14,979 nt of DNA from Octopus sinensis. Lineage: Eukaryota. Under the pieces are notes generated by a model. The model was not told where the DNA came from. It made no database searches and worked only from the letters and a program-made list of their open reading frames with translations. The stretch is from positions 1 to 14,979 of the forward strand of contig NW_021825554.1 of assembly GCF_006345805.1 (NCBI RefSeq), in the 5' to 3' direction. This document shows, in pieces, positions 1 through 14,979 of this stretch (positions within the stretch are counted from its first letter, which is position 1; every line of letters begins with the position of its first letter). Position numbers and translations under genes: made by a program.

Positions 1-1
1 C

Positions 2-260
2 AAATCTTCTGAAGAAATCGCAGATTTATTCCAAAGAATTTTTTATTATTCGGGCCTCCGCTTATTCTACACACTGATATGGAAGGGAATTAGCCTATGA
101 TTCACTGGATTATCAGAGGCACGAGAAAGTGCATTAGAAAACTTAATTATTGCTGGCGAAAAAATGATTGAAAAAAGAAAATGGAGATACGACGAAGAAA
201 TATCAATGTCGGAACGACTGTGCTTTTAAGGTCTCAAGCGTCAAATTAATTTTAGACAGG
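2..260 (+). mobile_element. Degenerate DDE integrase remnant, Ginger/KRBA2-SCAND3-like (pseudogene, runs off the window start)
   Basis: Joining frames gives KSSEEIADLFQRIF..FGPPLILHTD(N)GRE, matching the integrase-core motif IFxxFGxPxILxxDNGxEF. Two 1-nt deletions are needed (~45, ~79). Further on are ARESALENLIIAGEKM and NVGTTVLL, which resemble the C-terminal part of this family. Confidence 0.5.
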
Positions 261-546
261 ACAACGATGCCAATGTTCGGCAGTATCCGCTGTACGATGG
301 ACTTGATGTTAATAAGTATATTGTTGTCGAGCGAAGAAATGATCTCTATGTTATCGAAAGGAGGACGGTGAGCGGTTACACGGAATTCATATTTCTCGAT
401 TAGCTAAAATGATTAATTTTCATAAATCCATAATAAAATAATTTTTTATTTTAATAACATAAATTTTATATGAACAATTTATTAGGATAACCTAAAATGG
501 AATAAAATATTCAAACGTATAAGTTAACTGCGTAAATTGAGTGTGG

Positions 547-943: not shown

Positions 944-2215
944 TTATTTTGTAATCCAATTTAATTTATCTAAATCAGACATGCTCAAATCCGAAGATTC
1001 AACTTCGTTAGATGGCCGAGACAATATTATTGGATACCCCATCAGATCAGAAGAACATTTTACCAAATAAAGTCCAGTTTTATCAGCAGGTTTTTGGTGT
1101 GTTTCCTAATATTTATTCGATCTCTTAAACATCACAACCATGGATAGCATTCCATTAATGAAGGCAGCGCAAATTGACTCAATATTCCTTACATTTCGAA
1201 GTAATTTAACATAAACGTCTTCAACAACGACTCCGACTATAAAATAATTTTGCCAATATCCGCTGAGAAATAAGTCCATAACCAGCATCTTTCCGAATCA
1301 CAGTCATTCTGGCAGCTCCAAAACTCCAATCCATGTCATGATAAACTAATTAAAATGACTTTTACAGTAAAAACAAAATTTTAGACAATCAAAATACCTG
1401 TCCTATTTTCGAACAAATCAAAGTACAGTAAATTATTGGACGCCGAAATTTTAGCCTGAGACAGATAGTTTAATCAGTAATACAGAGGCTATGGCATCCT
1501 TCATTGAAGGTCTTGTCTCTGTTGCATATCCTGTCGAATAAACAGAATGAAAATACCGACGTCCCCCCTACAATTTCCCACCGCGACATAACTCGATACC
1601 AGTTTGCTCGTCCCAAAGAAGTCATTGTATAAAACCTTCTCGACTTTTTATATTTTGAAATAAAATACCATTAAAATTACACTTTTTAGGTCTGGAATCA
1701 CTTCTATAGAAGTAATAATAATTTAAACCGTTATTTTCGTCAGAACAAGCCGGCTGAGTTTCCAACAAGGCGGTTTCCGCTGAATCCACGATTTAATGGA
1801 TTTGTGAATTTTCCGGAAAAACCTGACTTTCGAAGGTCGGCACGGCTAAATTGTCTTTCCGAAACTTTAAGCGAATTTTTCTTCCCAAACTCAGGATCGG
1901 AGAATTGTGAAAAGTCAATGTCCTGTTTAGACAAGTCTGGAAATTTTACCCATGTTTGCCTGCATAGTAATGTTACTTTATAAACCAATCCATCCAAATT
2001 TTTGACCAGTGTTAAGATCCAGTACTTTTTGATCATCTTCCCCCTCTCCTTTCTTTAAACAGCTGGGCTTACTGAGGTCACTGTTTTCCAGAGATCTTCT
2101 GAATTTGCTGAATATTTATTATTTTATCAATTTATGATATACATCTGTCGAAAAAAGAACTTCTATCTATGCATGTGGTGGTGATATTTTTATGTTGAAT
2201 GTTTCTTAAAGACAT
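944..2215 (-). pseudogene. MRPS5: Mitochondrial ribosomal protein S5 (uS5m), frameshift-disrupted, 8 introns retained
   Basis: The reconstructed product contains SFFDRSNSEDLWKTVTSVSPA, DLNTGQKFG, PLNRGFSGNRLVGNSAG, TMTSLGR..YRV.VAVGNCRGDVGY, FENRTVYHD, GYGLISQRIL, EDVYVK and ETHQKPADKTGLYLV, colinear with animal MRPS5 motifs (SFFTKLTADELWK, DLNRGQIIG, RGWSGNSWGG, VLVAVGNGKG, YEDHTIFHD, GYGLRCHR, ETHQQLADKKGLHVV). GT-AG introns: 2108-2142, 1960-1985, 1704-1728, 1644-1668, 1531-1556, 1456-1483, 1346-1397, 1106-1138. Frame breaks at ~2059 (TAA 2055-2057), ~2028-2048 (compensated), ~1950 (TAA 1946-1948), ~1743 (TGA 1740-1742), ~1588 and ~1242. The 3' end at TAA 944-946 is uncertain. Confidence 0.9.
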
Positions 2216-2334
2216 GTTTTTTTCAATGATCCACAAGGAACAAACTTTCAACATTACTACTATTAATTAAACACATATAATTATTAATTTGAAAAAATTA
2301 AAATCAACAATATTAGATCAGTTTTCTAGCTTAT

Positions 2335-2905
2335 CGGAGACCTAGTCGCCATCCGCCAGAATTCAGATCTCCGCCCTCTTGAGGACATTGCTCAGAAACA
2401 AGGAGCACATAGAGCTCAGTTAACCCATTTCACCGAGACTTTGACCCTTCCTCGAGATGGAGGTAGATCCATACCGGGATGTCTCGCAGTTCTTTTCAAT
2501 CTGGAAGAAGGACCAGGATGGCAAGTAGAAGGAGCAGAAAGTGAGATTGGCTGACTTTGTTGCCGCCATCATGACATCTTGGAAGATGGAAAGCAGCCCC
2601 TTCAGAGAGGTGTTGGTGCGTACAAGTTTGCGAAGAACTTAATGATGGCTTGCCGATATTTCACTATGCCTGAAGCAGAAAAGAGGGCTCTGGCGGAAGA
2701 ACTACGAAGGCACCGAGATTCGAGCATTATTCCGCGATCCTCTAGCAACATCGGCGAAATACAGTGAAGATCTTCTATGGGTATGTCGGATTTCCTCGCT
2801 TCCACACAATCAACCTGGAGATGGTTCATGAGTTCATCGTCTCTGGCGTGCTTTCCCAAGCGGCTAGACCAGCTGGTTCTCAGGCCTCTTCAGCACCTTT
2901 AGTTA
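2335..2905 (+). other. GC-rich, intronless, decayed coding-like island of unknown origin
   Basis: Sampled 60-nt lines are about 48-53% GC against about 25% just upstream. Protein-like peptides alternate between + frames (FLEMEVDPYRDVSQFFSIWKKD; VRLADFVAAIMTSW; YKFAKNLMMACRYF; KIFYGYVGFPRFHTINLEMVHEF) and are separated by stops and frameshifts. No family recognised. Confidence 0.4.
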
Positions 2906-2970
2906 GTCTTATTATTTTCTTTTTCCTGACATCTTGGTCATTAATGAGACTTCATTCAGCACCTTTAGTT
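2889..2970. repeat. 16-bp direct repeat TTCAGCACCTTTAGTT (2889-2904 and 2955-2970)
   Basis: Exact match read directly; the copies are 66 nt apart. Confidence 0.9.
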
Positions 2971-3000
2971 TTTGATCAATAAACCAGTGTTTCTCAACGT

Positions 3001-3076
3001 TGGGCCCCAGGCCCACTTGTGGGCCTGAGAAATTTTGAAATGGGCCTGAAGATTTAATTGGGCCTGGAGTGGGCCT
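3001..3076 (+). repeat. Left subterminal TGGGCC(T) motif array of the transposon
   Basis: TGGGCC at 3001, 3020, 3041, 3059 and 3070, plus an inverted AGGCCCA at 3009-3015. The same motif occurs at the right end at 5098 and 5128. Confidence 0.85.
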
Positions 3077-3208
3077 CAAAGAAAATATGTTAATACTAAT
3101 ACTAATAAATCTTTATTCGTTATTATTTTCAAATTGATTTGATTTGTTTTTAATTTAATGATATTGTCATATTTAAATTTAAATATTATAGGCCTGATTG
3201 TATAGTTC

Positions 3209-5031
3209 ATGTCAAAAGTACACAAGGAAAAAAGGAAGACTACACGCAAATACCAGACTGATTTTTTATTACTAGGCTTCATCCCATCAAGTGCTGATTC
3301 TAAGAGGCCTGAATGTGTGGACTGTGGCTTAGTAATGACAAATGTTTCCATGAAGAAATCAAAATTGTTCGCCCATCAACAGTTGAAGCATCCTGCTTCT
3401 GTTGGAAAGGAGCGCAGCTATTTCAGGAAGAAAGTGGAGTTACGCCAAAAGAATGCTCCAAAAACTTTAGAATTCTGCTTAAAAAAAGCAAATGAGCATA
3501 ATAACAAGACACTAAAAGTCAGTTATGCAGTGAGTGAACTGGTTGCTAAGGTGGGGAAGCCACATACAATTGCAGAACGTCTGGTGAAGCCAGCAATGTT
3601 GATCTGTGCTAAAGAACTGCTAGGAGAACAGGCTGCCAACATTCTACAAAAAATCCCATTGTCTAATGACACAGTGAAGAGAAGGCAAATTGAAATGGCA
3701 GAAAACCTCGAGAAACAGCTTGTGGAAAAATTAAAAGTTTCTAAGTTCTCACTACAAATTGATGAGACAACAATCAACAATTCTGCCTTATTACTTACTT
3801 ATGTCCGATATATTGATGCAATGGCAATTCATGAAGAAATGTTATTTATAAAAAAGTTGATTGACACACGAAGCGACACTATATATGCGGCTGTTTACGA
3901 CTATCTGTACGATAATGGGATCCCTCTGTCAAATCTGTTGCAGATTGCAACAGACGGTGCCAGCGCTATGACCGGCAAACAGAATGGCTTTGTAGCTAAA
4001 TTAAAAAAAGTTGCCCCTCATATATTGGCAATTCATTGCATCATCCATCGAGAACATCTTTGTGCTAAATCTCTCAATGATGACATGGAACATGCATTGA
4101 AAGTCGCTGTTTCAACAGTGAATTTTGTCAAAGCCAATGCTTTGCATGACCGCCTATTTCAACATTTATGTGAACATGAGGACCACCAGAGACTCCTCAT
4201 GCACACTGAAGTGAGATGGCTTTCCAAAGGAAATTCCCTAGTTCGTCTTGCTGAAATGTGGGATATGGTTCTTATTTTTGTTCATGACATGAAAACACAA
4301 GCTTGTAGCAAGAAGCAGAAAGATAAAGCTGAGACTTTGTTTTCAGTGATAAATAACAACGATACAAAAGCAAGGATTTTTTACCTGGCTGACTTATTCG
4401 CACATGTCAACCAACTGAACATGACACTGCAAGGGCGAAATGCTAATCTGATAGATAGTGCTGAGAAAGTACGCTCTTTTTTGAACAAGTTATGTCTCTG
4501 GAAGATGCATCTTCAAAAAAATGAATTTGCTTATTTTTGTAATTTTGCCAAAACTGCTCCGAGCTCAGAAGTAATCGCAAGCTGCACTGACCACTTGAAA
4601 TGCTTGAAAGAAGATATGACTAGAAGATTTAAAGATATCATCGAAATGAATCCGCCTAGTTGGATTATAGATATAGCACATTTTGACGTATTAAGTGAAA
4701 AAGACATTGATCCTATTATTGCTGGAGAACTTCTTGAACTGAAGGAGAACAAAGTATTAATGAAAAATATTGAAAGGGATGGCTTATATGGATGGATGAA
4801 AGTAGAATCGATTCATCCATTACTCTTTGAAAAAGTTGTTCCGTTTGTACTTGGCTTTCCCACCACTTGGTTGGTTGAGACAGGATTTTCTGCAACAAAC
4901 GATTTACTCACAAAAAACGCAATCAATTGCAGATTGAGAAGAGAGGAGACTTACGTTTGAGGTTGAACCAAGATCTGGAAATTCAACTTGACAAATTGAT
5001 AGATAGACATCAAGAGCAGTGTAGTCATTGA
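3209..5031 (+). CDS. Buster-type hAT transposase (ZBED5/SCAND3-like). The given 583-aa ORF stops at 4960; the conserved C-terminus lies in the -1 frame and ends at 5031
   Basis: BED-like zinc finger (RPECVDCG...HQQLKH), catalytic D motifs LQIDETT and IATDGASAM, CxxH motif HCIIHREHL, EVRWLSKG, and catalytic E in WLVETGFS. After the A6 run (4912-4917) the -1 frame reads RNQLQIEKRGDLRLRLNQDLEIQLDKLIDRHQEQCSH*, the usual hAT C-terminal dimerisation tail ending in a QxSH-like motif. Confidence 0.93.
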
Positions 5032-5642
5032 CATTTTAATAAGATTTTTATGTTAATAAAAATACTTTTTTGTTAATCAAAGTTTTATTAAAGGCAATGG
5101 GCCTGAGATTTTATATGACCCTGAAAATGGGCCTCAGGGAAAAAAAGGTTGAGAAACACTGCAATAAACGACATTTCATTCCCAATTCCATAGAGGATTA
5201 AGTATTCCGAAACTTTGTCTTAAGCTAAAAACTTAATGCTCTGGAATTGAATTTAAATAACCGTATTGTTCTCATATAGTGCTACCTGACTAATGCACTA
5301 ATAGCTTAAACATGGTTTGTAGGAAAATTATACTTTAGCCAGCTAATTTAATTAGTCTCGTGGAATTTATTTGAACAGGTGAACCCTCGCAATTTGGCCA
5401 CCGTTTAAATCAATGATTTTGATGCTATGTTGGTTTGCGGGGAATCGCGATCGTCAAAATAATAAAGAAAAATTTATTAATTTAAGATATTTATTGAAGA
5501 GATCAACAAAAGAACTTCAGAATCTAATTTTATTGAAATTTATTTATATTTTTAAAACTTTTCAGCCTTGGCGTCTCACAGCTCTGGAATGTGACAAACT
5601 ATTTTTTACTAAAAAATAAGATTATAAAAATTCATTTATTCG

Positions 5643-5672
5643 AAAAATTGTCCCGATAGGAACTCGAATCCT
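5643..5672 (-). pseudogene. tRNA-like 3' half (T-arm, acceptor strand, T5 tract); possible tRNA or SINE remnant
   Basis: The minus strand reads AGGA-TTCGAGT-TCCT-ATCGGGACAA-TTTTT: a 4-bp stem with a 7-nt TTCGA loop followed by a Pol III-like T run. The invariant G53-C61 pair is absent and no 5' half is recognisable. Confidence 0.3.
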
Positions 5673-5683
5673 TGAATTTTCTA

Positions 5684-5720
5684 CTATGCCCAAGATATGA
5701 AGCTATGCCCAAGATATGAA
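5684..5720. repeat. Tandem duplication of CTATGCCCAAGATATGAA (period 19)
   Basis: 5684-5701 and 5703-5720 are identical. Confidence 0.95.
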
Positions 5721-5890
5721 TAAAATTCTTTAGAACTTCATTCTTTAAAGTAATTCTGCACCTTCTACTAAATATCTGTTTCCCTATTAGTGCTGTTGTA
5801 ACGTGACCCCTTGTGCAGAAAGAGTTTGGGCATGTCCTCTGATATCAGAAAATAAACGCAAATCAAAACTCGAGAAATACGAAAAAATTA

Positions 5891-7097
5891 TTAATGTATC
5901 GTAGACAACTTTGTAACAATGCAAACGCGAAAAGACTGGTCAAAAGATGTGGCAAGAGCCAACCCCTGCATTCCCCGACACCACTGAAAACTCGCAATAG
6001 TTGAGTCGCCAATGTAACATTCTGCAACAAATCAAGACTTCCGGCACATCCAGTTGTATTACCATTTCCATCGTCAATAATTCTTTTTTGAGGATATTTA
6101 CTAATCATTTTTATAAAAAAAATAATAACTATTTCCAAAGATACAGAGATCCTGACCCTCCACTAGTCATAAAAATTTCCCGATTTTGAGGCAAATGACG
6201 AAGTGTCCATAAAGTTGATTTGAGCCTAAATTCTATTAAAGATGTAAATTACTGTTTCTGTTAAAGAAGCAAAACTGTTCGATTTTGCACTTTCTGTCCT
6301 CATGTCAAAACATGGAACTTAGACTCCAGAGTAGTCACAGCCAATTTGTTCATACAAATGTCCTTCCTGTCGAATTCGACACAACACACTCCGTTTTTTA
6401 CATTTGTTTCCCAACGAAGTGCCATGGCACGTAAATCAAACAATTTTACGTCTCCGTTGTCAAATCCTGCACAAAGACCCCGATCACTCTCATTATATGC
6501 ATTTCCTCCATTTTAAAAACTTAATAAAAATACCGAATGCTAACGCCCACAATCTCGACGTTTTTCATCGAGGGATGGCTCCATCGACACAACCGGAGAA
6601 TCAGGCTGACGAGGATCCCACACTTTTACAGTCCCGTCTCGACTGCAGGTAGCTATTTCCGCTGCTCCCTCTCCTATTCCAGGCCGCCAACACCGTCCGT
6701 CGACCATATTTATGATCTCTGAATGTGCTTTTACGGAATAAACGAAGAATCGATTCTTTCCATATCCCTTGAAAAGTTATAATTCCATAGTAAGACCAGA
6801 TATCTAACGTTCCGTTAAGTCCCCGGTAGCTAGATGTTGTTTTCCTAATGCAGAAGCACCGAAAGACGAGCATCGAAGAGAGACAGGCTTGCTGACCTTA
6901 GAAAGTTAAAAAAATAAAATTACTTCTTGTACAAGTACAGCGTCCATGTTCTCCATTTCGTAAATACTAATTATTCCGTCCCCCTTTGGTTGACTGCCGA
7001 TGATGGAAAATTTGGTGGTATCTGGAATCCATTGGCCGTCATAAATAGTGTAGTTCAATGATTTTTGAACGTGAAGGATTATTTGTGGCTTCTCCAT
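5891..7097 (-). pseudogene. WDR92: WD repeat protein 92 (DNAAF10/Monad), frameshift-disrupted, 5 introns retained
   Basis: The reconstructed product is colinear with animal WDR92: MEKPQIILHVQKSLNYTIYD, HLATGD(F)[75 protein letters not shown](P)IASF, SFDQSFRVCIVTKL. Introns: 6897-6923, 6768-6796, 6506-6533, 6226-6252, 6101-6129. Indels at ~6817, ~6744, 6694-6701 (GACG duplication), ~6680, ~6549, ~6308, ~6221 (-2) and ~6000. Confidence 0.93.
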
Positions 7098-7389
7098 GTC
7101 CAGTAAACAATGCAAGTTTAAAAGTGATATTTACATAGAAACACTTTTATTTGAAATTTCTATTAAATATTATCAAAAATAAAAAAAAACATATATCCAT
7201 GATCCATATGTGAGGGTGAGTTTTGCATAGGTCTCATATAGTCTGAGGAAAAGAGACAATTATACAGAAATTTTTTAATCCAAGTTCTCATAAGCTTTTC
7301 CAAGGTCACCATAGATTACAATTTTCTTTTCGCCATGTCTTTCGGTGTCTTGAAGAAAAAAGCCAGGTTTCTTTGTCATTCTCTGCCGT

Positions 7390-7745
7390 TCTTGATCATC
7401 CAACATCTATACTTATAATAATTTTTCTGATCTCATAATATTGATTCTATGTATACTAAATAGGAATGGGAATAACTATTCTCCTGGTGGTGTGCAAAAT
7501 ACATTTATGACACCATGGGATGTAGTGTTGCTAATAAGAACTTTTGTTATAAATAGAAAAACCTGAATCCGAGTGTATGAGTTTATATCCAAAAAACTAC
7601 TGTGTACTTATATCAGTTTTCCGTGACTTACAGTGTCAAAAGCCGAAGTAAGACTAATTCCAAGAATAGTTATAGATTTTCTAAACATTCTGGGACACCA
7701 AAATACATTATCTGTGATTCCCCAGTCTGAAAACCGCTCTGACTC
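7390..7745 (-). mobile_element. Heavily decayed non-LTR (LINE-type) reverse transcriptase relic; may extend to ~8030
   Basis: One minus frame carries SAFDTVSHGKL (to 7614), ISNTTS, PPGE*LFPFLF (from 7490) and MLDD (from 7406). The spacings of 51 and 28 codons match KAFDTVxH...PQGSxLSPLLF...YADD. QSGF at 7730-7741 lies in another frame. Several in-frame stops. Confidence 0.6.
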
Positions 7746-8514: not shown

Positions 8515-9643
8515 ATGTCTGTTACCAAAATCGAACTGCCTATGCAAGAAACTCAAAAAGATCACAAATATCTCAAATACATGAGCATAATTTTGCTGGT
8601 GATACAATCAAGCTCAACAGCACTTGTAATGCGATACGTCCGCACTCGCGAAGGGAAAATATTCGATTCTGCCACGGCCGTAGTATGTACAGAAGTCCTA
8701 AAAGTACCTAAAAAGTGTCTTATTCTCAGACATTGATATGTATGTGTGTCATTGCCCACCAAAACGGAGGACTTTTCGGACTTTTATACGACCTCCAATA
8801 TCATATAATCACTAAATACCAAGATATGCTAAAAATGGCGATTCCCTCACTCTGTTACGTAGTACAGAATAATTTGGTATATGTAGCTGTTTCCAATCTT
8901 GATGTTGCTGTTTTTCAGGTTTTGGTGTTTGTTTTTTAATCCTCAGACTTTGATGCAAATGAAAATAATAACGACTGCCTTTTTCGCAGTGATTATGCTT
9001 AAGAAGAAGTTGTCACGTTATCAAATCATTTCTCTTCTCATTCTAACATGTGGCTGCATTTTTGTCAACGTCCAGGTACACTTTTTATTACATTATGTAG
9101 TCGAGCTCTGAGAAAGTGAATAGAACTCAGATGCTGTCTTATGGACTCACTAGTATATCTATTGCCGTTATTCTATCCGGATTTTCTGGGGTCTTTACAG
9201 AAATGATGTTAAAACAGTCCAATCCGTCGCTTTGGTCAAGAAATATTCAGGTTTTATTTTTTGATGTTTTGTTAGATGGGACTGTATGGAACCATTGGAG
9301 GGCTTTTTACGATTTTGGCTAAACCTGACGGGGCTCAAGTTTTTCAATTCGGTTTTTTCCAAGGGTACACTCCTTATGTTTGGTTAGAGTCTGATTGTAG
9401 TTCATGTTTAGGTTAGTAATAATTCTACAGGCAGTGGGTGGACTTTTGGTGGCTTCAGTAATGAAATATGCGGACAATATTTTGAAAGGGTTTGCGGCCG
9501 CGTGTGCCATCATATTTTCAACTTTTGGGTCTATTTTCCTCTTTGATTTTACCCCGGATTATTTGTTTTTTGCCGGAATTATACTCGTTGGTCTCTCGAC
9601 GGTTATTTATGCCAAATATCCGTATAAGCAACCTACTAAATGA
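8515..9643 (+). CDS. Nucleotide-sugar transporter, SLC35A family (UDP-Gal/UDP-GlcNAc transporter-like), about 331 aa, 6 exons, intact
   Basis: Exons 8515-8703, 8730-8918, 8947-9075, 9101-9250, 9276-9382 and 9412-9643 (996 nt) splice into one open frame. Family motifs: TAVVCTEVLK, IPSLCYVVQNNLVYVAVSNLDVAVFQ, QMKIITTAFF, SGFSGVFTEMMLK, LWSRNIQM, GGLLVASVMKYADNILKGF. The A2 versus A3 paralogue is not resolved, and the start codon could be 8542. Confidence 0.93.
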
Positions 9644-10688: not shown

Positions 10689-11134
10689 CTATCCAAAAAC
10701 CCGTTCCTTAGCATACTCAATATAGACAAGATGATCATCTTCCACAAACTTGTCATAAATCTCTCCAATGGTGCAACTAATGTAATCTATTATTAGTAAC
10801 TGCAAGGAAGCTGGTTTGCCACCGACAGAAAGAAATATAGCCGAGTCTGACTGTAGTTTTAAACGATTCCTCACAAGACGACATATAGAATCCATAGTAA
10901 CAGTACGGCTAATTATAAATCTCCGTTTATCTAAGCATTCCAATTGTTCATTACTGTTTAAACGATCGATAACAACCTTATATAATTACTTAAGTAGAAT
11001 ACAGGGACTTTAGATGGATGAGATTCGAGTGCTTCTGTAGCTCTTGCCTTTCGATTTTCTACGAGAAGTAACAAATTAATGACAATACCAAAAGAATGTA
11101 TTTCTTTATATCTTCTTATATCATTAGTTTTCAT
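10689..11134 (-). CDS. ATG8: Divergent ATG8/LC3/GABARAP-family ubiquitin-like protein, intact, ends in Gly
   Basis: Introns 11059-11088, 10977-11002 and 10777-10800 give MKTNDIRRYKEIHSFENRKARATEALESHPSKVPVVIDR...LDKRRFII...RNRLKL...AIFLSV...TIGEIY...LVYIEYAKERVFG*. This matches the Atg8 pattern Y/FKxxHxFExR, PxKVPVIIE, LDKxKF, IRxRLxL, YxxExxFG. Confidence 0.9.

Positions 11135-12981: not shown

Positions 12982-14979
<1,998 letters not shown>

Follow-up and report, generated by a model that had tools for sequence, protein, structure and literature searches.

The window analyzed here is a 14,979-nt stretch of DNA in which two conserved genes, one MRPS5-like and one WDR92/DNAAF10-like, together carry 13-14 frame-breaking indels. 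We put the probability at about 60% that these frameshifts are consensus errors of the deposited assembly, from an unpolished long-read block, and not part of the organism's DNA. Most likely, the lesions are not a real biological feature.

We built gene models with a custom aligner tolerant of introns and frameshifts. In a PDB search, the MRPS5-like gene matched residues 189-392 of human uS5m at E=1e-22 and residues 88-146 at E=1e-4, and its repaired product scored above the Pfam cut-offs for PF21251 (45.9 bits), PF00333 (37.8 bits) and PF03719 (25.6 bits). Judged by these matches, the uS5m N-terminal extension and the S5 N- and C-terminal domains are all present, which supports the predicted identity. 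Two frame jumps in this gene, at 1556-1531 and 1483-1456, were rejected as frameshifts; they are introns of 26 and 28 nt. The WDR92 model came out identical from five different orthologs. Named DNAAF10/WDR92 proteins matched it at 53-62% identity over 100% of the query, with E values down to 1e-143, and mollusc orthologs were 62% identical to the repaired protein. This full-length, collinear similarity to DNAAF10 orthologs points to the same family. Left unrepaired, the spliced WDR92 mRNA reaches a termination codon after 88 codons.

Table 1. Genes, elements and frame-breaking lesions in the window (positions count from its first nucleotide)
Feature	Position	Strand	Remarks
MRPS5 (uS5m)-like gene	2215..944	-	spliced, frameshift-tolerant alignments; PDB and Pfam matches
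MRPS5 introns, 7-8, GT-AG	2142-2108, 1985-1960, 1746-1704 (optional), 1668-1644, 1556-1531, 1483-1456, 1397-1346, 1138-1106	-	
Lesion M1, -1	2059..2060	-	SPA then GLKKGEGE; alternative: frame runs through TAA 2057-2055, shift at 2024
Lesion M2, -1 at GGG run	1949..1951	-	GKHG then VKFPDLS; alignment and three-frame reading
Lesion(s) M3, one or more (+1 or -2); two in the model that omits the 43-nt intron	1640..1750	-	exact site ambiguous; alignments and manual frame analysis
Lesion M4, -1	1588..1589	-	between YTMTSLGRANWYRV and VAVGNCRGDV
Lesion M5, +1	1238	-	between GYGLISQRILAKLFY and VGVVVEDVYVKLL
Relic, GC-richer, reverse-transcriptase-like motifs	2330..2900	+	RQNSDLRPLED, LADF; stops and frame hops
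hAT-like (FAM200/GTF2IRD2-like) DNA transposon	2985..5161	+	17-nt terminal inverted repeats and target-site duplication
Sole transposase lesion, A6 run one base short	4912..4917	+	next frame KRNQLQIEKRGDLRLRL...QCSH, stop 5029-5031
WDR92/DNAAF10-like gene	7097..5891	-	ATG at 7097, stop 5893..5891
WDR92 introns, 5, GT-AG, 27-29 nt	6923-6897, 6796-6768, 6533-6506, 6252-6226, 6129-6101	-	
Lesion W1, -1	6817..6818	-	ATGD[F]NGTLDIW
Lesion W2, -1	6744..6745	-	WDMERIDS then VYSVKAH
Lesions W3 and W4, net +3	6679..6701	-	GACG tandem duplication 6694-6701 (+4), then -1 near 6679-6680
Lesion W5, -1	6550..6551	-	KRRD[C]WALAFG
Lesion W6, -1 in or adjoining T run	6310..6311	-	KFH[V]FDMRT
Lesion W7, +1 or -2	6222	-	-2 restores conserved His of AHKST
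Lesion W8, -1	5999..6000	-	LATQ[P]IASF
SLC35A-type nucleotide-sugar transporter, 331 aa	8515..9643	+	5 introns of 25-29 nt; no lesions
ATG8-like gene	10689..11134	-	no lesions
SMC3, 5' half	12982..14979	+	human SMC3 1-551, E=6e-136; GT-AG-only path 566 aa; no lesions

The first-pass annotation had reported about 14 indels in the two genes, and spliced, frameshift-tolerant alignment bears this out, with 5-6 in the MRPS5-like gene and 8 in the WDR92-like gene, or 0.64-0.69% (13-14 in 2,040 aligned coding nt). The density is alike in both, 8 in 1,050 nt for WDR92 versus 5 in 990 nt for MRPS5 (p=0.58). SLC35A, ATG8 and SMC3, previously described as free of lesions, indeed have none in 3,045 coding nt (Fisher p about 3e-6 to 7e-6 against the broken genes). 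Equal density in both genes, with so much clean coding sequence a few kilobases away, argues for an assembly error, and an indel density of about 0.65% is within the error range of an unpolished CLR consensus. At least 9 of the lesions are a single missing base and 3-4 are surplus bases or 2-nt deficits; the set is deletion-dominated, not deletion-only. It had further been claimed that most are a base missing beside an identical one. Seven of the nine single-base deficits do fit, but this is not clearly above chance, since one can choose, over a span of a few nucleotides, where the base is missing and which base it was.

We then considered damage other than indels. As had been asserted, the aligned frames of both broken genes hold no stop codon in the most parsimonious models, a result that depends on how the MRPS5 N terminus is modeled, because an alternative frame passes through TAA at 2057. 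If 5-10 substitutions are assumed per indel, the probability of zero stops is 0.03-0.001. GT-AG is kept in all 12-13 introns (25-52 nt), so that 48-52 splice-site nucleotides are intact. The repaired WDR92 protein mismatches 4 of 69 invariant columns and 31 of 176 columns that are at least 90% conserved; for SLC35A, which is intact in this window, the counts are 2 of 41 and 13 of 87. Conserved-column mismatch runs at 5.8/10.5/17.6% versus 4.9/9.8/14.9%. By this comparison, missense change at conserved positions of WDR92 is no higher than in SLC35A. Across the W3/W4 span, the present frame reads RCWRP where the ortholog consensus is VGGL, and the other frame reads DGVGGL, the consensus. Damage that is almost purely indel, spares the splice sites and adds neither stops nor surplus missense change supports the assembly-error reading, and it agrees with the annotation's view that this is not ordinary neutral decay.

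The lesions may nevertheless be real, which we consider possible but clearly less probable. The region at 0.9-7.1 kb would then be a redundant MRPS5-WDR92 pair, in a segmental duplicate, or in a degenerate haplotype block that entered the haploid assembly, and it would have escaped selection recently, with functional copies elsewhere or on the other haplotype. Slippage-biased decay would have produced 1-nt losses and gains and short tandem duplications, and transposable-element debris and a young hAT element would have landed there. Equal lesion density in the two genes is what shared age predicts, and the hAT element, given its nearly intact ORF and flawless target-site duplication, would suit a recent insertion into sequence already dead. 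The GACG duplication (already noted in the first pass) and a tandem duplication of 19 nt at 5684-5720, whose copies are identical, are typical of true slippage, and one MRPS5 reading contains the TAA. The Dicyema japonicum genome, reported with 49% repeats and 1.24% heterozygosity, would also suit such a block. However, the parsimonious model contains no nonsense codon, every splice site is preserved, and missense change does not exceed that of SLC35A. Under real decay, no more than about 2 substitutions could have accompanied each indel, and eukaryotic pseudogenes usually show far more. It would also take chance for the limits of the decayed block to match the gene ends. Unprocessed (duplicated) pseudogenes do resemble the window in being intron-bearing copies with frameshifts, adjoining transposable-element debris and having intact neighbors, but the window genes lack their premature stops, splice-site loss and excess radical substitutions.

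From intron size and best protein matches, the window looks dicyemid, and we infer that it is part of the Dicyema japonicum Platanus and Falcon assembly. Among animals, introns of 25-29 nt have been described only in myxobolids and D. japonicum, and every best match of the intact SLC35A is a spiralian protein, from octopus, oysters, snails or a nemertean. Because dicyemids are ciliated, they are unlikely to manage without WDR92. An animal that has both cilia and mitochondria should not be able to do without either gene, which is a further reason to favor the assembly-error reading. We also considered a source among the myxobolid myxozoans, for example Henneguya salminicola. That animal has neither a mitochondrial genome nor cilia, so that MRPS5 and WDR92 would be unitary pseudogenes freed by loss of function. 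Its median intron is 27 bp, and it is just the genes for a mitoribosomal protein and for an assembly factor of ciliary dynein that are broken, with housekeeping neighbors intact. This source is nonetheless very improbable, given the spiralian matches of SLC35A and the lack of any cnidarian among the named top WDR92 matches. Myxozoans as a group have no cilia, and WDR92 should be unrecognizable in one, yet here the repaired protein and its orthologs share 62% identity and the introns are intact. The conservation of SMC3 relative to human is likewise unexpected for myxozoan proteins, and an indel-only pattern speaks against any old decay.

The published D. japonicum assembly merged Illumina (Platanus) with PacBio RS II (Falcon) data, the latter at a nominal coverage of about 100x, and gave 5,012 predicted genes and 76% BUSCO. 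The paper, the only one on a dicyemid assembly that was found, describes no polishing; the words "polish", "Pilon" and "Quiver" are absent from it. If the window belongs to this assembly, its merged Falcon contigs, for which no polishing is described, are one more ground for the assembly-error reading. Such a merge would produce a mosaic of accurate Illumina-derived blocks and long-read-derived blocks in which small indels amount to roughly 0.5-1% and substitutions hardly occur. The long-read block in the window would span about 0.9-7.1 kb, its limits being approximate. It would probably have been kept because short reads did not assemble across the reverse-transcriptase-like relic and the hAT repeat, and short-read quality would begin at about 7.1-8.5 kb. 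In the animal, MRPS5 and WDR92 would both be intact and expressed. Frameshifts caused by long-read assembly errors are documented, in general terms, in PMC12007338 and PMC8812927. As in unpolished or hybrid assemblies, clusters of 1-nt indels disrupt otherwise conserved genes, substitution-type damage is lacking and accurate sequence adjoins error-rich sequence.

Some observations fit assembly error less well. Error density is not uniform in the block: a single lesion, as previously stated, lies in the 1,821 nt of the transposase between the two genes (p about 0.001-0.002 versus the flanking genes), a pattern not expected of a simple uniform error block. The multi-copy transposon may be cleaner because reads of many copies feed its consensus. 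A repeat cleaner than its unique flanks is the reverse of what polished assemblies usually show. In contrast to the errors of unpolished or hybrid long-read assemblies, the lesions do not cluster in long homopolymers, and one is a 4-nt tandem duplication. The GACG and 19-nt duplications look like real replication slippage and unlike typical single-base read errors. PacBio data at the nominal depth should also give less than 0.65% errors unless local depth was low.

The annotation had offered three options. A long-read or polishing artefact is the best supported, slippage-biased decay is a live rival, and editing or frameshifting that rescues the genes found no support. In this third option, bases are truly missing or extra in the DNA and nuclear mRNA is repaired by insertion/deletion editing or by repeated ribosomal frameshifting, which we regard as extremely improbable. 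The argument for it is indirect only: two indispensable conserved genes are frame-broken and show no other damage. Were the germline breaks real in a dicyemid and both genes expressed at full length, which is scarcely credible, nucleotides would have to be added to and removed from nuclear mRNA, or ribosomes would have to shift in both directions with no motif. Different sites call for different bases (T, G or C), 4-5 sites require removal, 3-4 of them of a base and one of 4 nt, and the neighboring genes require no repair. No shared motif or slippery heptamer was found within 15 nt of any of 13 lesion sites, and the runs at the sites are short (1-5 nt), which makes transcriptional slippage implausible. 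Insertional RNA editing occurs in Physarum mitochondria and U insertion/deletion in kinetoplastids, +1 frameshifting is frequent in Euplotes, and poly(A)-tract transcriptional slippage operates in insect endosymbionts. There, too, the DNA looks frame-broken, and full-length protein is still made, but each of these systems uses one nucleotide type or one motif (such as AAA-TAA/TAG, or A runs of about 9 nt or more), and all except Euplotes are organellar or bacterial. The sites in the window are heterogeneous, bidirectional and motif-free, and the genes are nuclear, since they have spliceosomal introns. We know of no such system for nuclear spliceosomal genes. Editing or recoding is effectively excluded.

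If the lesions are artefacts, they are cautionary: gene-loss and "reduced genome" claims for parasites like dicyemids may be inflated by frameshift-ridden long-read blocks, and seeming pseudogenes of essential genes should be compared with reads before they are interpreted. If they are real, they would document in a dicyemid either a mutation spectrum biased unusually toward indels or a degenerate haplotype block, of moderate interest for studies of mutation and genome reduction. Interest would be major solely if the very unlikely repair of transcripts or reading frames were true.

Two elements lie between the broken genes. The relic next to MRPS5 had no Pfam match and, judged by its motifs, is a putative reverse-transcriptase remnant. 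The transposase of the second element has 12,442 relatives, proteins of about 590 aa among them, and the C terminus of its shifted frame matches that of the full-length ones (...RGDLRL...QGSH). The transposase itself gave a weak Pfam match only, to DUF4371 (E=0.034), and the gene adjoining one of its relatives matches PF27046 (FAM200-GTF2IRD2-like). The target-site duplication, CAATAAAC, is a perfect 8 bp at 2977-2984 and 5162-5169. Together with the short terminal inverted repeats and a hAT-type C-terminal region, this 8-bp duplication supports assignment of the predicted transposon to the hAT superfamily.

The first-pass annotation had counted about 14 indels in MRPS5 and WDR92 and none in SLC35A, ATG8, and SMC3. 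We examined these genes with a protein-to-DNA aligner written for this analysis, which permits GT-AG introns, one- or two-base frameshifts, and stop codons. Indeed, with introns and frameshifts accounted for, the two broken genes carry 13 to 14 lesions in 2,040 aligned coding nucleotides (0.64 to 0.69%), and not one is present in the 3,045 coding nt of the three intact genes (p = 3e-6 to 7e-6 by Fisher's test versus the broken genes). The SMC3 path aligns over its whole length with residues 1 to 551 of human SMC3 (E=6e-136). Lesion density does not differ between MRPS5 and WDR92 (p=0.58). The transposase of the hAT-like element located between them has a single lesion in 1,821 nt (p about 0.001 to 0.002), in line with the one that had been noted. 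Here an A6 run is short by one base, and the frame after it reads on as ...KRNQLQIEKRGDLRLRL...QCSH, matching the C termini of full-length relatives.

Features of the window and lesions of the MRPS5-like gene
Feature	Position (nt)	Strand	State
MRPS5/uS5m-like gene	2215..944	-	broken
MRPS5 lesion	~2060	-	-1
MRPS5 lesion	G run 1949-1951	-	-1
MRPS5 lesion(s)	between 1750 and 1640	-	one or two
MRPS5 lesion	1589	-	-1
MRPS5 lesion	1238	-	+1
RT-like relic, GC-richer	~2330-2900	+	reverse-transcriptase-like motifs, stops, frame hops
hAT-like transposon	2985-5161		17-nt terminal inverted repeats; perfect 8-bp target-site duplication CAATAAAC
WDR92/DNAAF10-like gene	7097..5891	-	broken
SLC35A-type nucleotide-sugar transporter	8515-9643	+	intact; 331 aa; five introns of 25-29 nt
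ATG8-like gene	11134-10689	-	intact
SMC3, 5' half	12982-14979	+	intact; path with GT-AG introns only, 566 aa

The window is AT-rich eukaryotic DNA with spliceosomal introns of merely 25 to 29 nt. Once its frame is restored at the lesions, MRPS5 scores above the Pfam cutoffs for the uS5m N-terminal extension and both S5 domains and matches mammalian uS5m at residues 88 to 146 and 189 to 392. Two of its frame jumps are introns, of 26 and 28 nt, rather than frameshifts. Misplaced ultrashort introns do not explain the remaining jumps: outside those two in MRPS5 the explanation fails, and in WDR92 a path with GT-AG introns only requires nonhomologous sequence in place of conserved segments. Five orthologs from different phyla gave an identical WDR92 model with five introns of 27 to 29 nt. 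Single bases are missing from it at about 6818, 6745, 6551, 6311, and 6000, and at 6222 either one base is extra or two have been lost; the second option would restore a conserved His. Where the gene reads RCWRP, the neighboring frame gives DGVGGL, the exact ortholog consensus. The GACG duplication reported in this gene is a tandem one (6694 to 6701), followed about 18 nt on by a one-base loss, and this explains why the stretch has left the frame that yields DGVGGL. When spliced without correction, the WDR92 mRNA meets a stop after 88 codons.

The damage does not look like ordinary decay, as the first-pass annotation had argued. About 5% of random substitutions in the codons of the broken genes would yield a stop. 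Decaying eukaryotic DNA usually accumulates 5 to 10 substitutions per indel, at which 3 to 7 stops are expected and the probability of zero stops is 0.03 to 0.001; zero is unsurprising only at ≤2 substitutions per indel. The most parsimonious model has none. The purine-rich stretch of MRPS5 at 2024 to 2075 (- strand), AAAGAAAGGAGAGGGGGAAGATGATCAAAAAG, gives K/R/E/G-rich peptides in two frames, and either one looks like the basic segment near the N terminus of mammalian uS5m. Its lesion can thus be read in two ways, as a single frameshift or as a TAA with a frameshift; in the second, alternative reading the frame is kept across the TAA at 2057 and changes at 2024. The description of the genes as free of nonsense thus holds for the parsimonious model only. 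All introns keep GT-AG as described, with every one of the 48 to 52 splice-site nucleotides intact (probability 0.17 to 0.02 at the same divergences). Against its orthologs, repaired WDR92 mismatches 4/69 invariant columns, 13/124 columns conserved at ≥97%, and 31/176 at ≥90%, two of the columns (positions 152 and 153) lying inside the frame-shifted RCWRP stretch. The corresponding numbers for intact SLC35A in the same window are comparable, 2/41, 6/61, and 13/87. Amino acid change in broken WDR92 is not detectably above the lineage baseline. The lesion process is essentially indel only.

It had also been proposed that most lesions are a missing base next to an identical one. This applies to 7 of 9 single-base deficits, but about half of random deletions would also adjoin an identical base; since both the site and the identity of a lost base can vary over a few nucleotides and 7/9 is near chance, we give this pattern no weight. 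An association with homopolymers was not demonstrable, as run-length spectra are alike across the regions of the window. A further proposal, that editing or recoding of the transcripts rescues the genes, hardly deserves credence: the needed bases are heterogeneous, some sites require removal of a base, shifts in both directions are required, the sites share no common motif, and the genes are nuclear and intron bearing. A repair mechanism is thus not supported, and the cause of the frame breaks is most likely technical.

We favor, with a probability of about 0.6, the view that ~0.9 to 7.1 kb is an unpolished block derived from long reads in a mosaic assembly and that its small indels are consensus errors. 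Such errors would produce an indel-only spectrum, equal density in both genes, intact splice sites, normal conservation of the repaired proteins, and a sharp switch to lesion-free sequence. They also explain why the victims are two genes that should be indispensable to the animal. The window has no case or N patterns marking an assembly join. A block of consensus errors alone does not account for the transposon inside it being ten times cleaner; reads from many copies may have deepened the transposon consensus. Consensus errors also leave two duplications unexplained, GACG and a perfect 19-nt tandem duplication at 5684 to 5720 (CTATGCCCAAGATATGAAG, 1.9 copies) in the WDR92 3' flank, within the lesion-bearing block. 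Both resemble true slippage mutations or polymorphisms rather than read errors. These duplications, the young hAT insertion, and the equal lesion density would all fit real lesions in a redundant duplicate or degenerate haplotype that decays with a spectrum biased strongly toward slippage. This is a possible but less favored explanation, and it requires mutations of an unusual spectrum as well as a functional copy as yet unseen.

Among animals, introns this short are reported only from myxobolid myxozoans and the dicyemid Dicyema japonicum (2026 survey, PMC13644364). Intact SLC35A finds its best matches only in spiralians, namely octopus, oysters, snails, and a nemertean. Large protein searches returned only distant orthologs for WDR92 and SLC35A and no protein from the same species. 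A ciliary dynein assembly factor whose sequence looks fresh is understandable in a dicyemid, which is ciliated, but not in a myxozoan; to our knowledge, myxozoans have no cilia. From the short introns, the spiralian affinity of SLC35A, and the fresh ciliary gene, we infer that the window is probably dicyemid. Origin from a myxozoan (Henneguya), with MRPS5 and WDR92 as unitary pseudogenes, would elegantly account for which two genes are broken, but the taxonomic affinities of the proteins and the fresh look of WDR92 contradict it, and we consider it very unlikely. For the D. japonicum genome, Illumina (Platanus) and PacBio RS II (Falcon) assemblies were made apart and then merged, and the words polish, Pilon, and Quiver are absent from the paper, which gives 1.24% heterozygosity, 49% repeats, and 76% BUSCO completeness (PMC6736024). 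If hybrid unpolished blocks are common in the source assembly, one may speculate that the very low gene count of D. japonicum and its 76% BUSCO partly reflect assembly frameshifts rather than gene loss.

Rfam and tRNA scans of the window detected nothing, and five of its ORFs had no exact counterpart on look-up. Pfam gave no match for the RT-like relic, the ORFs at 1 to 943, or a putative small gene between WDR92 and SLC35A (7278 to 7688, - strand). The latter reads MFRKSITILGISLTSAFDT... and ends ...KKIVIYGDLGKAYENLD, with a hydrophobic stretch at its N terminus. Positions 1 to 420 (+ strand) resemble the 3' end of another gene, terminating ...YPLYDGLDVNKYIVVERRNDLYVIERRTVSGYTEFIFLD*; a 25-nt intron is likely at about 229 to 253. 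The relic has a GC content of 46%, versus about 34% elsewhere; because Pfam finds nothing, its RT assignment is a putative one based on motifs. The hAT element is inserted at the right edge of this relic. Over 1.1 kb, and as far as the terminal inverted repeat, its 3' half (4038 to 5161) shares 80% identity with a copy at 9533 to 10650 of L001, a gene-poor, TE-rich locus (mariner-type transposase, RT fragments) on an 858-kb contig of the ENA metagenome assembly ERZ25067582. This contig could come from the same species or a relative; if it belongs to the cephalopod host, the shared element would be a hint that the transposon moved horizontally between host and parasite.
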